Source: Octopus bimaculoides
Lineage: Eukaryota
Assembly: GCF_001194135.2 (NCBI RefSeq)
Contig: NC_069009.1
Coordinates: 2,202,272 to 2,238,447 of the forward strand
DNA length: 36,176 bases
Reading direction: 5' to 3'
Numbering within the stretch: the stretch's first letter is position 1; each line of letters begins with the position of its first letter. Under the pieces are notes generated by a model. The model searched no databases. It had not been told where the DNA came from and saw only the letters and a list, made by a program, of their open reading frames with translations. Positions 1,758 to 36,104 of this stretch are shown here, piece by piece. The position numbers and the translations under genes were made by a program.

Positions 1758-1829
1758 AGATATCCTAAACTGGAAAGGCCATTGAAGGATCCTACTTGAA
1801 GTTTCTCCATACCATTTCCATTCAAAAAT
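1758..1829 (-). CDS. LRR exon L1 (class B): FLNGNGMEKLQVGSFNGLSSLGY(L)
   Basis: Acceptor AG at 1830-1831, donor GTAAGT at 1752-1757 (minus), 72 nt, phase 2-2. Confidence 0.92.
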
Positions 1830-2219
1830 CTATGAGATAAAAGGTTGGAAAGGAGATTTATTGTAAAATATTATGATTGAAATGTCTATAAAATAAAATA
1901 TTAGATGATTAGAAAATGTATAGAAGTGTTTTATTATAAAATGTAAAATATGGTGGCTAAAAAATAACTTTTTGATATACTCCTATGCACCACACATCCA
2001 TACAGATTTATGCAGAAAATAGTTCCCCTGATCTATCATGCTCTCATATATGCCATATCGTTGAAATTGGCACACTTTCACTCACACAGGTTTAGAAACA
2101 ATATAACATCTTTGGAAACACGGATCAAGGAACTTAAAACGGATGAAGGGAAGATAATGCAGATTTAGAAATATATCACCAATGAAATACGAAAAAAAGA
2201 AAAAACTGATTCAACTTAC

Positions 2220-2291
2220 ATATATTCTAACTTGTTTAGATTTCGGAAGGAGTTTGTTTTGATTTCCTTGATCTTATTATAACGCAAGTCT
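2220..2291 (-). CDS. LRR exon L2 (class A-like): DLRYNKIKEIKTNSFRNLNKLEY(I)
   Basis: AG at 2292-2293, GTAAGT at 2214-2219, 72 nt, phase 2-2. Confidence 0.92.
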
Positions 2292-2393
2292 CTGGAACAT
2301 AAAATTGAGACAATAAGAAATCATATAGAGTATATTTGGGATTGAATTTTTCCTAAACAATTAGATGATGGAATTAATCACGATGATGAATAA

Positions 2394-3310
2394 CACGGGT
2401 CATCAACAAAAAATTTTGAAATGGTGTTGAGACACCAAACATCTTTTGTTTTTTTAGCTAATTTGAGGGCACTGAATCTGAAAATGACCTTACTTTTTCT
2501 TGGTTAACCACCGTTTCTGCTGTACAGAAATGCCTCATTTTGGGGAAAAAAGTATTTTTTTCATTCGTTTTCTGTATATTTGATATTGAATAATAGCAAT
2601 ATTTCTCAAAGTAAAATCGTAGAAACTTCTCAATGGTAAAACTTTTCTCTTTCTTGATTGTCCATCATGTCCAATGTTGTTCAAGTCAGCCATCATTCAT
2701 TTGTCCCACCGTACTTAGTAGCGCTCTTCCATAATTTTGATATCCCGATGGAATGGTTCTCCTTGATCATCGCTCACATCACCGCAATTATCCGGAAATC
2801 TATCTAGATGGCTATGTAAAAAAATGAACCTTAATACTCATATTAGCGCCTTTGTCCTGTATTCTTTTCAACAGCTTTTCCACTAATTCCTTGTAGTGTT
2901 TGGCCCGGAGATTGCCTAAGAGGTTTTTCACCAGGTCTGCAAACGATGTGCAAGTGCGTAATTCCAAGTCATTCATTGAATTAACAAATTCACCATCCTC
3001 AATGAGTTTCCTGATATCAGGGTCATTAAACAATCTTGCTTTATGTTTTTGGGTGCTAAGTCCTGGAAACGATTTACATATAAACTCAAAACATTTACTT
3101 TCTTTGTCGAGTGATTTTATACACTGTTTCATTAATCCCAATTTGATATGCAAGGGAGGGAAGATGATTTTTTTTCTTTCAGAACTAGCGCTGCACTAAT
3201 AACATTTACATTACATTTTGCGTGATCACATTTAGGTAATTTGATCTTTCCTAATGTCTGCTCCGAATCTGAGGAATGGGCCTTCGCTCGCATTCACAAA
3301 CAATAAAATG
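2394..3310 (-). mobile_element. Decayed DNA transposon, C-terminal transposase half plus terminus (Chapaev3/CMC-like)
   Basis: Minus strand gives IIFPPLHIKLGLMKQ...LLGN...MSIKVHF(fs)LHSHLDRFPDNCGDVSDDQGEPFHRDIKIMEERY*, matching the HIKLGLMK and SDExGERFHQDI motifs. The terminus CAC at 2394 follows TAA. Frameshifts and stops are present. Superfamily assignment is from memory of the motifs. Confidence 0.7.
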
Positions 3311-3556
3311 CCTTTTGGAAAAAGACAGATTTTCACATACAAACAGGCATACACATGCATGCAGCAAATGGTTCCCCTGAACTATCAGGCTCTAATATAT
3401 GCCATATCATAGAAATGGGGACACACTCACGCAGATTTACAAACAATAAAGCCCATCTTTGGAGAGACGGGTGAAGAAGCTTAAGATGAAAGATGGGAAG
3501 ATAATGGATTTAGAAATAAATCGTGAATGACATATTAAAAAACCGATTTAACTTAC

Positions 3557-3628
3557 AGATATGTTAATTTGGACTGACTTCGGAAGGTGGCTGCTTTGAT
3601 ATCCTTGATATCATTATAACTCAAGTAT
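3557..3628 (-). CDS. LRR exon L3 (class A-like): YLSYNDIKDIKAATFRSQSKLTY(L)
   Basis: AG at 3629-3630, GTAAGT at 3551-3556; peptide also visible at the end of ORF 3553..4899. Confidence 0.92.
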
Positions 3629-33776: not shown

Positions 33777-33848
33777 AGATATTTTAAGCTGGTCAGACCA
33801 TCGAATGATCCTACTTGAATTTTCTCGATATTATTTTCATCCAAATAT
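33777..33848 (-). CDS. LRR exon L22 (class B): YLDENNIEKIQVGSFDGLTSLKY(L), same peptide as L17
   Basis: AG at 33849-33850, GTAAGT at 33771-33776; one silent difference from L17 (TCC/TCA). Confidence 0.9.
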
Positions 33849-34164
33849 CTATAACATAAAATTTTGGAAATAAGATTTATTGTAAAATATTATGACAGAA
33901 ATCTCTATAAAATAATATATTAGATGATTAGAAAATGTATAGAAGTGTCTTATGATGAAATGTAAAATATTATAGATAAACAATAATATCGTGTAGGAGA
34001 AGGAAGGTAGGTGAGTATGAAGCATGTTCGTTAATCAACGTTAATCTGGAGATAAACACAGGAAATGATATAGAGTTAATAACAGACACAAATCGATACA
34101 CTCTCATAGATTCACCTTATAAAAAGTCACAAACATGCACACACATACACACACACATATATAC

Positions 34165-34261
<97 letters not shown>

Positions 34262-34479
34262 TACATATATATAAGTCAATAAATAGTGGGCTTGTGTTAA
34301 CCGCACGTGGAGAAATAATAGGAAAATGAAAAAATATTGCTCCCCTTGTTTCTCTTTACATTGTCAATCTCCTCAGGTAGAAATATGTGATTCTTTGAGA
34401 ATGCTTGTATAGCATCTTCGCTAAATACTTAGTAATATATTCTTAATGAAATATTTTCAACAAGACTTAGCCAACTTAC

Positions 34480-34551
34480 ATCATCATTAAACTGGACAGA
34501 CCATCAAAGGTTCCTACTTGAATTTTGTCCATTTTATTTTTATTCAAATAT
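34480..34551 (-). CDS. LRR exon L23 (class D): YLNKNKMDKIQVGTFDGLSSLMM(I)
   Basis: AG at 34552-34553, GTAAGT at 34474-34479, 72 nt. Confidence 0.92.
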
Positions 34552-36032
34552 CTGTAAAATATAATATTAGTTGATATGGATACTTAGAGAGGAACATTAT
34601 TGTAAAATATATCATAACAGCGAAATCTTTACAAAATAAGATGATGAGAAGTATTTTCTGATAAAATGTAAAATATTGTTAAACAATTACTTGATGGAGG
34701 AAAAAGAAAGTAGATGAGGATGATGAGGATAATATTGAGAATAAAGGAAATGAAGCGAAGGATAGTGATGGAGGTGGTCGTTTTGGTGTGGGTGAATATA
34801 ACGAAGAGGCTGTGGATAGGGGATGGTGGTAGTGTTGTTGAAGCTAATTTTATTGTTGATGATGGTTCGTGGAAATGATATTGATGATGGTTATTATGGC
34901 GATGATGATGATGAAACGATGAGAATTTTTATAAAACATAAAGAAAAATTAAACTTCAATAACTTAATGTGAACTATATTTGAGTCGACGGACTGAAAGA
35001 TGATTAAAATTGAAAGATGTTGAAGGAAGATGAGTAGGGTCTGAAAGAGAATAAGGATCAGTAAAATATGAAGAATAAGATTGCAATAATGGAGCAGCAG
35101 TAAAACTCTAGGAAAATTAAAAGACGGGGAAGTATAAGAAAATAACGAAATGGAGGAACAGAGGCAAATAATAAATGTGAGACCAAACGATAGAAGACGA
35201 CGTAGAGAAAGAAAGAAAAAGAAAAACAAGAAGAAGAAGAAGGGCAACAAAAACAAGAAAAGAGAAAGAAGGAAAAGAAAAAGATGGAGATTAAATGACG
35301 ACGAAGAAGAGGGAGCAAAAGAAGAGGGAGAAAAAGAAGAAGAATCAGAAGAAGAAAAAGAAGAAATAAAAGTAAATGTAGAAGATGGAGAAGAAAACCA
35401 TAAAAGAGAAGAAGCAGAAGATGAGGAAAAGAAAGAAGCTAAAAACGTAGGGAAAGAAGGAGATGACGAAAAGAAGAAGCATATAACAAAGAGAATTAAA
35501 ATGTCCCCGAAAGCAACAATTACATCAAGAGGAAATGAGGAGGGAAAACATGAAGGACAGACTTAGGAAGGGAAAGAAATTGAGGGAGAAGAAGAAGGAT
35601 AAATAGGAGGAGAAGAAGACCAATGAGAAGAAGAGCAACAATGAGAAGAAGAGCAACAATGAGAAGAAAAATAAAGGGAGAAAAACAAGAACCGCTAAAG
35701 TTTATTTTAAGAAATAACGATATGGTTCATCTGGTGCAAAATATACATCTACAAGGGTCATTCAACGATGTTATTTAGCTTCGATCTACATTTAAACACC
35801 TTATGTAATATACATACATACACTCACAACCGTTCATCCATACAGATAGACATACACATGCATGCACTAAATGTTTCCCCTCAAGTATCACGCTCCCATA
35901 TATCTCACATCTCAGAAAGGCCTCCAAATTCACATTCATTCACTAAATATAAATTGCATCTATACAAAGATATTACAGGTTTACAAATATATCGCCAAAG
36001 AAATATTATAAACGTAGGTTGATTCAACTTAC

Positions 36033-36104
36033 AGATTTGTTAAACTGGAAAGATTCCGGTAGGTTTCCGCCTTGATTTCTTTGATTTCATTACCGCGCAA
36101 ATCC
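36033..36104 (-). CDS. LRR exon L24 (class A): DLRGNEIKEIKAETYRNLSSLTN(L)
   Basis: AG at 36105-36106, GTAAGT at 36027-36032, 72 nt. Confidence 0.92.

Follow-up and report, generated by a model that had tools for sequence, protein, structure and literature searches.

A tandem array of 24 single-leucine-rich-repeat exons in Octopus bimaculoides and its relation to an Octopus-restricted family of adhesion GPCR-type genes

The encoding of one leucine-rich repeat (LRR) per 72-nt exon is an old metazoan design, represented by LGR4/5/6, the relaxin receptors, GRL101 and Slit. We analyzed a 36,176-nt stretch of the Octopus bimaculoides genome (contig NC_069009.1, positions 2,202,272 to 2,238,447 of the forward strand; this whole stretch is hereafter called the window and is cited by its own positions) that carries 24 exons of this design on the minus strand. 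The exons are numbered 1-24 in sense order, exon 1 having the highest plus-strand coordinates and exon 24 the lowest. The array resembles the genes named above in exon size, phase and LRR class; however, the octopus relatives of the locus combine their LRRs with 7tm_2 and GPS domains, have no LDLa, EGF or LamG domains, and show no caps between LRR blocks.

The closest described system is the 'group 3' of adhesion G protein-coupled receptors (GPCRs), an octopus-specific expansion in which LRRs occur in 5 of 22 members; the group is co-localised and bears signs of positive selection, and its expression was reported from the axial nerve cord, suckers and skin (Ritschard et al., 2019; PMC6408891). 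The window locus and its relatives share with this group a 24-residue LRR per 72-nt phase-2 exon, a distribution restricted to Octopus, a clustered arrangement and the reported positive selection, and the exon and intron DNA of the window is homologous to the locus of XP_052833813.1. In two respects the window stands apart: the collection that we searched holds no protein model for it, and it contains at least 24 LRR exons, the longest array seen, versus about 20, 11-12 and 4 in three relatives. On these sequence features, the window locus and its relatives appear to fit the group 3 expansion (PMC6408891).

Four further systems invite comparison. ADGRA2 and ADGRA3 (GPR124/GPR125) are similar to the octopus relatives in their N-terminal LRRs, LRRCT, HRM-type module, GAIN/GPS and secretin-type seven-transmembrane (7TM) part. 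ADGRA proteins contain an Ig domain and just about 4 LRRs, whereas the octopus family has many LRRs as well as Cys-rich and SEA-like modules without a Pfam match, and NCBI names its 7TM part ADGRG6-like. Arthropod Dscam1 also contains tandemly duplicated exons of the same size and phase that encode variable recognition surfaces, and the related octopus genes likewise have many isoforms; however, the Dscam modules are Ig half-domains used one per cluster, whereas the octopus modules are additive units of a solenoid. The variable lymphocyte receptor (VLR) loci of lampreys and hagfish have in common with the window LRR modules, hypervariable concave faces and a genomic library of such modules. 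VLR assembly proceeds by somatic gene conversion, which copies cassettes into an incomplete gene (PMC13428168); the VLR cassettes are not joined by splicing, whereas every module of the window is a bona fide exon.

The fourth system, the LRR-ROCO and LRR-kinase genes of the brown alga Ectocarpus, encodes each LRR in a 72-nt exon and combines exon shuffling and diversifying selection on the LRRs with inactivated copies in introns (Zambounis et al., 2012; PMC3341825). The same set of features was found in the window, namely one LRR per 72-nt exon, a recombined array, dead intronic copies and diversifying selection, and the window LRRs match the Ectocarpus 'type II' register xLxxNxLxxxxxGxxxxxxxLxxL (PMC3341825). 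Unlike the window product, the algal proteins are intracellular ROCO GTPases, and intact copies are present on the non-coding strand of the algal genes (PMC3341825), whereas all 24 exons and both dead copies of the window lie on the coding strand and none on the opposite one. The likeness is one of convergence, not homology.

Relative to the literature that we found, three elements are new: the exon-level anatomy of an octopus family member with at least 24 exons, the amplification within the locus as seen in conversion tracts and a concave dN > dS, and the connection with the LRR cassette variation that is annotated in transcripts of relatives. Already known were the exon design (LGR, Slit and relaxin receptors), the expansion of the family (PMC6408891) and receptors with shuffled single-LRR exons (PMC3341825). 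We propose, with roughly even confidence, that the window is an internal, ectodomain-coding piece of an unannotated Octopus-restricted LRR/adhesion-GPCR gene that was amplified in situ, has diversified its concave face, and has variably spliced 5' exons.

Exon array and its Octopus relatives

The pattern AG-N72-GTAAG occurs at 26 minus-strand sites of the window, 24 of which translate in one frame to xLxxNxIxxIxxGxFxxLxxLxx. The pattern YAG-N13-AAY-N56-GTAAG gave 24 matches, all on the minus strand and identical to the same 24 exons, versus 0.15 +/- 0.39 expected from 100 dinucleotide shuffles; a scan of the plus strand for LRR-coding 72-mers returned nothing sensible. Each exon is 72 nt long and consists of 1 nt, 23 codons and 2 nt, hence its phase 2-2. 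All 24 exons are open and are preceded by a pyrimidine tract and a CAG or TAG acceptor, and their donors are GTAAGT (22 exons) or GTAAGC (exons 4 and 9). The introns within the array measure 213-2958 nt. Joined in genomic order, the exons encode 575 aa, that is 24 LRRs of 24 residues, which match Pfam LRR_8 with E = 5.6e-212; there are 23 distinct peptides, exons 3 and 8 encoding the same one. By nucleotide identity we distinguished type A (exons 1, 7, 12 and 15, with exon 13 being A-like), type B (2, 5, 10 and 17), type C (3, 8 and 16), type D (4, 9, 18 and 19) and type E (6, 11 and 14), while exon 24 is a C/B hybrid and exons 20-23 are singletons. The exons, as located by the exon scan, are as follows.

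36033..36104, minus strand: exon 1, type A, DLRGNEIKEIKAETYRNLSSLTN; 72 nt from the window end
34480..34551, minus strand: exon 2, type B, YLNKNKMDKIQVGTFDGLSSLMM
33777..33848, minus strand: exon 3, type C, YLDENNIEKIQVGSFDGLTSLKY; 113 nt from the gap 33184-33664
32048..32119, minus strand: exon 4, type D, NLGDNNLKDIKAGTFRNLSSLER; donor GTAAGC
30951..31022, minus strand: exon 5, type B, FLIKNKIEIIQEGTFDGLSSLMM
29181..29252, minus strand: exon 6, type E, ALANNVINELEVGSFQHLSSLES
28896..28967, minus strand: exon 7, type A, NLNNNEIKEIKAEAFRNLSSLTN
26845..26916, minus strand: exon 8, type C; peptide identical to that of exon 3 (YLDENNIEKIQVGSFDGLTSLKY)
25813..25884, minus strand: exon 9, type D, YLSGNNLKDIKAGTFRNLSGLSS; donor GTAAGC
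24041..24112, minus strand: exon 10, type B, QLNKNKIDKIQVGTFDDLSSTGL
23410..23481, minus strand: exon 11, type E, NLMDNDINELEVGSFQNLPSLLF
22300..22371, minus strand: exon 12, type A, LLSRNEITKIKAEAFRNLSSLIF
19714..19785, minus strand: exon 13, A-like, TLNENKITKIEAATFRNLPRLAL
17694..17765, minus strand: exon 14, type E, YLYKNAINELEVGSFQNLPRLTT
16563..16634, minus strand: exon 15, type A, HLFNNEIKEIKAETFYNLSSLTT
14532..14603, minus strand: exon 16, type C, RLDENKIEKIQAGSFKGLISLRS; exon and intron block in register with exon 27666-27737 of the relative locus L001 (see below)
12088..12159, minus strand: exon 17, type B, YLNSNKMDKLQVGTFDGLSSLRI
10059..10130, minus strand: exon 18, type D, NLNRNRLKEITVGTFRNLSSLTE
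8683..8754, minus strand: exon 19, type D, NLVSNKFEEITVETFQNLSSLTT
8280..8351, minus strand: exon 20, older, without a close copy in the window, YLDYNQIEKVDERAFDDMSSLMK
5250..5321, minus strand: exon 21, older, SLRYNNIKEIKEDTFQNLPFLTT; 79% identical to an L001 exon, nearer than any window exon
3557..3628, minus strand: exon 22, older, YLSYNDIKDIKAATFRSQSKLTY; 83% identical to L001 exon 18163
2220..2291, minus strand: exon 23, older, DLRYNKIKEIKTNSFRNLNKLEY
1758..1829, minus strand: exon 24, C/B recombinant, FLNGNGMEKLQVGSFNGLSSLGY; upstream flank of C type, downstream flank of B type

The exons end in CT (18 exons) or AT (6 exons) and all begin with G, A or T; therefore any pair of them joins as CTN (Leu) or ATA/ATG/ATT (Ile/Met), and the codon split at each exon junction, LRR position 4, encodes Leu, Ile or Met without exception. 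Thus, every subset of exons would remain in frame and keep the hydrophobic core. Exon 1 is only 72 nt from the window end, so that the array very probably continues upstream. The closest solved structures to the product are the typical-LRR ectodomains of IGFALS, TLR3, LRRC15 and LGR4/5, and its sequence supports the assignment as an LRR recognition ectodomain.

Searches for further exons returned the array itself. A tblastn search of 173 family and LRR proteins against the window matched only the 24 exons (E <= 0.01), low-stringency tblastn with LRRNT/LRRCT and Cys-motif scans of the window found only translated CA/TG microsatellites, and a GAIN + 7TM query had no match in it. The LRRCT (MxCGCHLPAxVxY), Cys-rich, SEA-like and HRM-like segments of the relatives were not found in the window, of which just 1.7 kb, with two gaps, lies 3' of exon 24, whereas the introns of relatives reach 6 kb. 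Rfam and tRNA scans of the window were empty, and Pfam gave nothing meaningful for six intronic window open reading frames (ORFs). Besides the intact exons there are two dead copies, both upstream of E-type exons and duplicated together with them:

18452..18523, minus strand: dead E-type LRR exon; acceptor TTTTTTCCAG intact, frame open (TLYNNAIKKTEVGIVQKFSGLTEF), donor now TAATTT
near 29951..30010, minus strand: truncated LRR exon remnant (..GIFQNLSSLIE), a paralogue of the dead copy upstream of exon 14

A preliminary description of this DNA had listed 24 open 72-nt exons of phase 2-2 with GTAAGT/C donors and 23 peptides, dead copies, and no other exon type; the scans recovered all of these, with the array on the minus strand, and the tblastn, Cys-motif and GAIN/7TM searches found no exon other than these 24.

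To place the array we compared it with four relative loci: L001 (O. bimaculoides CM046629.1, at 10.40 Mb), which encodes XP_052833813.1 (P0005), L003 and L004, which are also on CM046629.1, and L002 (O. sinensis VCDQ01004985.1), the locus of a family gene with 13 isoforms. The best named protein relatives of the spliced product are from Octopus, in addition to generic LRR ectodomains, which were matched widely. They include XP_052833813.1, named 'toll-like receptor 5', of O. bimaculoides (43% identity) and XP_036369864.1 (P0017), named 'LRRC15-like', of O. sinensis (50% identity). A protein search with exons 19-24 alone found no close orthologue and a single match at 42% identity. In L001, too, each LRR has a 72-nt exon of its own with a GTAAGT donor, the exons being spaced by 1.5-6 kb; about 20 of them follow each other and are divided over two gene models, one of which stops directly after the LRR exon 9743-9814. 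Exon and intron blocks of the window align with L001 in register at 68-78% identity over 0.3-1 kb; for example, window positions 14331-15349 align with L001 27942-26939, and exon 16 falls on the L001 exon 27666-27737. This alignment through exons and introns indicates homology of gene segments, beyond a shared protein motif. A 24-residue LRR per 72-nt phase-2 exon, a GTAAGT donor and a spacing of 0.2-6 kb are common to the window, L001, L002 and L003. The earlier suggestion of a cephalopod LRR receptor or ligand-binder agrees with these results, the nearest proteins and the intron-level DNA homology both being from Octopus; the locus is not the hidden or unique one that had been supposed, since it is one member of a known octopus-specific expansion (PMC6408891) and L001 has about 20 such exons.

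Behind its LRRs, XP_052833813.1 continues with LRRCT-like (MMCGCHLPALVNY), Cys-rich, repeated SEA-like and HRM-like segments, for which Pfam gave no significant match. All 34 proteins returned by a protein search with this non-LRR part belong to O. bimaculoides, O. sinensis or O. vulgaris, with no orthologue outside Octopus; several of the 34 are named 'adhesion GPCR G6-like', and one (P0143) runs on into 7tm_2. Two segments of this region, located in residues 340-784 of XP_052833813.1 and in its relatives P0129 and P0121-P0153, are without a Pfam match and recur only in Octopus proteins. One is Cys-rich, with about 12 conserved Cys (QCQTCSG..C..C....CC.G.LC); the other is the repeated 'WTNSFxFxLI...EVEYCG' segment. 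An AlphaFold model of P0129, covering the LRRCT/Cys/SEA part and built from a 21-sequence alignment, reached a mean confidence (pLDDT) of just 52.5, and the Cys-rich and SEA-like labels are to be read as sequence impressions.

The arrangement of gene models at these loci suggests larger genes. L003 holds, within 28 kb and on one strand, four LRR exons, an LRRCT/Cys/SEA model (P0129) and a GPS + 7tm_2 model; L004 holds an LRRCT/Cys/SEA model (P0148) followed on the same strand by a GPS + 7tm_2 model. These one-strand series indicate that the annotation cuts single genes into pieces, and the models of L001, L003 and L004 appear to divide them into LRR, LRRCT/Cys/SEA and GPS-7TM parts. For a neighbour gene in O. 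sinensis, the annotation gives a product of 1088 aa that combines LRR_8, GPS and 7tm_2. RefSeq names in the family range over ADGRG6-like, slit homolog-like, LRRC15-like, decorin-like, chondroadherin and 'toll-like receptor 5'; the TLR5, slit, decorin, chondroadherin and LRRC15 names are automatic best-hit labels. The locus thereby exposes annotation errors such as the 'TLR5' and 'slit' labels and the splitting of genes into three models.

Three of the identities that such names or the exon design might suggest were considered and rejected. A Toll-like receptor is contradicted by XP_052833813.1, in which Pfam detects no TIR domain and whose C-terminal part matches only the octopus family of adhesion-GPCR type, and no TIR or cap exon was found in the window. 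In the case of Slit, the 24 LRR exons follow each other with no cap exon between them, and the relatives have neither EGF nor LamG domains. Against an LGR/GRL101-type gene, the relatives carry 7tm_2 and GPS rather than 7tm_1, and the number of LRR exons differs between loci.

Growth of the array and divergence of the concave face

In sense order, the exon types form the higher-order series A-B-C-D-B-E, A-C-D-B-E, A-A'-E and A-C-B-D-D. Sister blocks of exon and intron are 67-98% identical, and their homology reaches into the introns. When exons of the window, L001, L002 and L003 are compared, the nearest match of each of exons 1-11 and 14-19 is another exon of the window; for exons 12 and 13, window exons and exons of the three other loci are at about the same distance; and exons 20, 21 and 22 are as near or nearer to particular L001 exons than to window exons. 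This pattern points to an old 3' end of the array and indicates that the 5' nineteen exons are largely a product of amplification within the locus.

The flanks of several sister exons are mosaic. The upstream intron of exon 2 is 96.7% identical to that of exon 17, and their downstream introns are not shared. The blocks of exons 3 and 8 are 97.8% identical; since only this pair is similar enough, the question of an assembly duplicate arises for it alone. Units 1 and 15 share a nearly identical tract of about 0.5 kb:

35540..36055, minus strand: 3' part of exon 1 and downstream intron, 96-100% identical to 16089-16585
16089..16585, minus strand: 3' part of exon 15 and downstream intron, 96-100% identical to 35540-36055

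Outside this tract the two units are 58-88% alike, and the boundary of the tract lies inside the exon. Judged from the sequence, such a tract and the mosaic flanks are the apparent traces of unequal crossover or gene conversion, in which the exons serve as shared homology. The duplication and shuffling of the array that had been anticipated is thus visible in the 67-98% blocks, the mosaic flanks and the tract that ends inside an exon, all of them in germline sequence.

Variation between the repeats is concentrated on the putative binding face. Over the 24 repeats, the entropy is 2.7-3.2 bits at LRR positions 2, 3, 5, 7, 8 and 10 (the concave sheet and an adjacent position), 0.5-1.3 bits at L4, I11, I14 and L22, and 0-0.25 bits at L1, L6, N9 and F19; L6 and N9 are present in 24 of 24 repeats and F19 and L1 in 23. 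A variable concave face and a constant core are by themselves normal in LRR proteins, and we therefore examined rates of change. In pairs 1/15 and 2/17 the exon is more diverged than the intron, but an explanation of this by plain positive selection was rejected, the flanks being mosaic conversion or crossover tracts; because of these mosaic flanks, codon classes were compared within ten disjoint pairs of sister exons by the Nei-Gojobori method, as proportions of nonsynonymous (pN) and synonymous (pS) differences.

Concave codons have a pN of 0.432 (64/148 sites) and a pS of 0.220 (7/32 sites). The values for core codons are pN 0.048 and pS 0.090, those for the remaining convex and loop codons pN 0.125 and pS 0.118, and those for the whole exon pN 0.185 and pS 0.132, while the flanking introns of the same ten pairs diverge by 0.114 (n = 2672). 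The concave pN exceeds the concave pS (p = 0.028), the whole-exon pS (p = 1.4e-8) and the pN of the rest (p = 8e-18). Replacement change on the binding face is thus about 2-4 times the silent rate, and the core is conserved. This combination speaks for duplicates that diversified under selection rather than for a decaying pseudogene. The hypervariable concave face of the preliminary description was in this way borne out both by the entropy peak at the six positions and by a concave pN above the synonymous and intronic values.

Exon usage in relatives and alternative explanations

Annotated transcripts of other Octopus species differ by whole repeats. In the RefSeq records of O. sinensis, one family gene has 13 isoforms (XP_036355612-23 and XP_029656609.2) of 409, 385, 361 or 337 aa, and another has 7 isoforms (XP_036369232-38) of 525, 501 or 477 aa; in both genes, the isoforms differ in whole 24-residue LRR units that are present, absent or swapped. 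At L002, which corresponds to the former gene, the variable units map to the tandem 72-nt exons nearest the 5' end, every one of which occurs in 3-4 of 13 isoforms, while 12-13 of 13 isoforms include the 3' exons. The optional exons have equally strong GTAAGT donors, and donor strength therefore does not discriminate constitutive exons from cassettes. Two more intact-looking LRR exons of L002 (28668-28739 and 31667-31738; 72 nt, GTAAGT), located past the last used one, occur in none of the 13 isoforms. In O. vulgaris, the transcripts of one family gene (CAI9732351-56; 489, 465 or 441 aa) vary in one or two LRR units and in the choice of the first unit; alternative forms in this annotation were derived with PASA from Iso-Seq and RNA-seq, with a mean of 1.36 transcripts per gene (PMC10700109). 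As the isoforms of the relatives carry none, one, two or three variable LRR exons together, the exons are of the cassette type and not mutually exclusive. Apparently optional use of single-LRR exons is, then, annotated in the family in two species. The combinatorial splicing proposed earlier would thus have indirect support, in that isoforms of relatives (two O. sinensis genes and one O. vulgaris gene) differ by LRR units. The immune, neuronal and gamete roles suggested along with it are conjecture.

Taken together, these observations suggest the following model. The family plan comprises an LRRNT, a number of typical LRRs, an LRRCT, and Cys-rich, SEA-like and HRM-like segments, to which several loci add GPS and a secretin-type 7TM part, and family members are accordingly adhesion GPCRs or 7TM-less derivatives; the window locus may be of the 7TM-less kind. 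Exons 1-19 arose within the locus by repeated duplication of exon and intron blocks of five types, and exons 20-24 are older and have counterparts in a paralogous locus. This growth involved unequal crossover or gene conversion, with breakpoints in or beside exons. After duplication, the concave residues (positions 2, 3, 5, 7, 8 and 10) diverged faster than silent sites, with the L/N/I/F core being kept. Ordinary GT-AG splicing would yield an LRR arc, presumably the ligand-binding region of a recognition protein that is secreted or sits on the cell surface; in full-length members the arc would precede the SEA/HRM/GAIN-7TM part and act as an adhesion-GPCR ectodomain. By extension from the relatives only, transcripts of the locus probably skip variable subsets of the 5' exons and so vary in LRR number and composition.

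Several points weigh against this model. L001, the nearest relative locus, has no GAIN/7TM within 10 kb downstream. The LRRCT, 7TM and signal-peptide exons are not in the window, and membership of the family is read from its LRR exons and introns. No annotated protein in the collection, which includes the O. bimaculoides, O. sinensis and O. vulgaris proteomes, contains these exons; the locus may have escaped gene modelling or lie in a genome without annotation in the collection, may be unexpressed in the sampled tissues, or may be a pseudogene. As for the selection test, it uses short exons and no recombination-aware model, and the concave codons lie at exon ends, where chimerism by crossover could inflate the difference (pS is 0.22 there versus 0.11 elsewhere). 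All 24 donors of the window are GTAAG of consensus strength, which by itself favours constitutive inclusion, and cassette splicing at the locus is plausible from the transcripts of its relatives rather than from its own. Those transcripts have weaknesses, too. One LRR exon of L002 (11131-11203) is 73 nt long, with an extra A within a poly-A run, and 5 of the 13 O. sinensis isoforms are chimeras around this exon, in which its first half is joined to the second halves of other LRR exons at an internal AG|GT; they look like model-repair artefacts, or else reflect an assembly indel, whereas the other eight consist of whole canonical exons. Mis-mapping of spliced reads and template switching among similar exons are possible sources of false junctions.

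The strongest alternative accepts the same family and history and differs in the use of the exons: all of them would be constitutive and together encode one solenoid with 24 or more LRRs, comparable in size to the TLR and IGFALS ectodomains, so that diversity would be evolutionary only, existing between paralogues, individuals and species and not within one animal. We consider this a possible but doubtful explanation. It accounts well for the uniform GTAAGT or GTAAGC donors and good acceptors of the 24 exons and for the presence of the L002 3' exons in 12-13 of 13 isoforms; 24 typical LRRs are within the range of the solved ectodomains that were matched at length (TLR3, IGFALS, LGR5), and some isoform diversity of the relatives is annotation artefact. 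It is harder to reconcile with transcript differences of whole LRR units in two species with independent annotations, with the equally strong GTAAGT donors of the optional L002 exons, and with annotated family proteins that have just about 3 to 13 LRRs.

An unlikely alternative is that the locus is an unexpressed or decaying relic, i.e., a duplicated LRR segment that lost its promoter or downstream exons recently enough for its exons to be still intact. Consistent with this are the absence of any window exon from the protein models of the collection, three Octopus proteomes included, the lack of a cap, transmembrane or signalling exon among those found in the 36 kb, and the dead copies in introns. 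However, all 24 exons have kept open frames and intact splice sites despite the 2-30% divergence of sister blocks, and the core LRR residues are nearly invariant. Neutral decay would not be so patterned as to leave a core pN of 0.048 beside a concave pN of 0.432 (p = 8e-18, concave versus rest), and the two real dead copies display what actual decay looks like here.

We also considered that the copy number is inflated by uncollapsed haplotypes or by repeats mis-scaffolded at gaps, with far fewer LRR exons in reality. There are six runs of N in the window, including 315-329 and 872-971 in addition to the four listed below; all are intronic or 3' of the array, and the minimum distance from an exon to a gap is 113 nt.

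3921..4302, no strand: gap in intron 21/22, adjoining an (AAG)n tract
13614..14191, no strand: gap in intron 16/17, adjoining (ATAG)n
26466..26565, no strand: gap in intron 8/9, with flanks collinear with those of the gap 33184-33664
33184..33664, no strand: gap in intron 3/4, adjoining an (ATAT..)n array

The gaps abut microsatellites, which are the usual cause of a short-read assembler stopping. Both flanks of the gap 26466-26565 are paralogous, in the same order, to the flanks of the gap 33184-33664, which supports the scaffolding there, and since each exon is self-contained and symmetric, no gap can break the reading frame. A gap may conceal an exon, and the order of blocks across gaps is a matter of scaffolding, hence 24 is a minimum or approximate count. 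Six gaps within 36 kb, the 97.8% identity of the exon 3 and exon 8 blocks, both of which lie beside gaps, and the 0.5 kb tract of 96-100% between units 1 and 15, which could be a mis-join, give this explanation some ground. Nevertheless we judge it very improbable: the remaining sister blocks are just 67-93% identical over exon and intron, which is beyond allelic divergence, the exons encode 23 distinct peptides, exons 3 and 8 have different surroundings, exon 2 being in one of the units only, and artefactual exons would number one or two at most.

A germline library for VLR-like somatic conversion, or a Dscam-like cluster with one exon per transcript, both raised by the preliminary description, is the least credible explanation by far: the modules are interchangeable, of a single phase and variable on the concave face, and conversion-like tracts exist in the germline sequence, but every module has a canonical acceptor and a consensus donor, which is unexpected for cassettes copied by conversion, no incomplete receiver gene and no constant exons were found in the window, the isoforms of relatives hold 0-3 variable exons at once rather than one of a mutually exclusive set, and introns of 213-2958 nt impose no steric exclusion.

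Beyond the window, a broader and rather speculative proposal, which we think has a small chance of being right, is that single-LRR exon arrays in octopus LRR/adhesion-GPCR genes are regulated combinatorial cassettes by which one gene would give many ectodomains. If so, the ectodomains would vary in LRR number and concave sequence, perhaps from cell to cell in the axial nerve cord, suckers or skin, and the arrays would be a device for recognition diversity, similar in purpose to Dscam1 or the clustered protocadherins and built from solenoid repeats, with the window array as its most expanded example. To our knowledge, Dscam-type splicing diversity is lacking in octopuses; they have expanded protocadherins and several expanded GPCR groups, which are thought to be related to their large, distributed nervous system and chemotactile arms. 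LRR cassette splicing in cephalopods was not described in any paper that our literature searches turned up. The locus offers a base-pair view of how an octopus-only family would gain binding surfaces by duplication of single-repeat exons, crossover and fast concave change. If optional cassette use holds, it would be a new route to surface-receptor diversity in animals; if it fails, the locus is still a clear case of exon-level birth-and-death evolution in an LRR receptor.

Repeats and other sequence features

The whole window shows a strong purine excess on the plus strand. Long (AAG)n/(GAA)n microsatellites on this strand occupy window positions 4417-4764, 15773-15943, 19393-19476 and 24258-24409; read in the sense direction, they are (CTT)n/(TTC)n pyrimidine tracts in several introns. 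A tract of the same kind is present in the introns of the O. bimaculoides relative L001 (about 39473-39661). Intronic tracts of this kind could be sites for pyrimidine-tract splicing regulators.

The remaining features are isolated. A 113-aa ORF (2812-3153, minus strand) of normal composition in intron 22/23 has no meaningful Pfam match and no exact record in the protein collection; it resembles part of a protein of transposon origin. Window positions 1356-1579 are occupied by an interspersed repeat, which has two counterparts in O. bimaculoides L003 (26225-26437, at 89.7% identity, and an inverted second copy) and a more distant one in O. sinensis L002 (77% identity). A tandem duplication (22907-23045 and 23186-23324; 139 nt at 98% identity with a spacing of 279 nt) in the intron that separates exons 12 and 11 yields two similar spurious ORFs.

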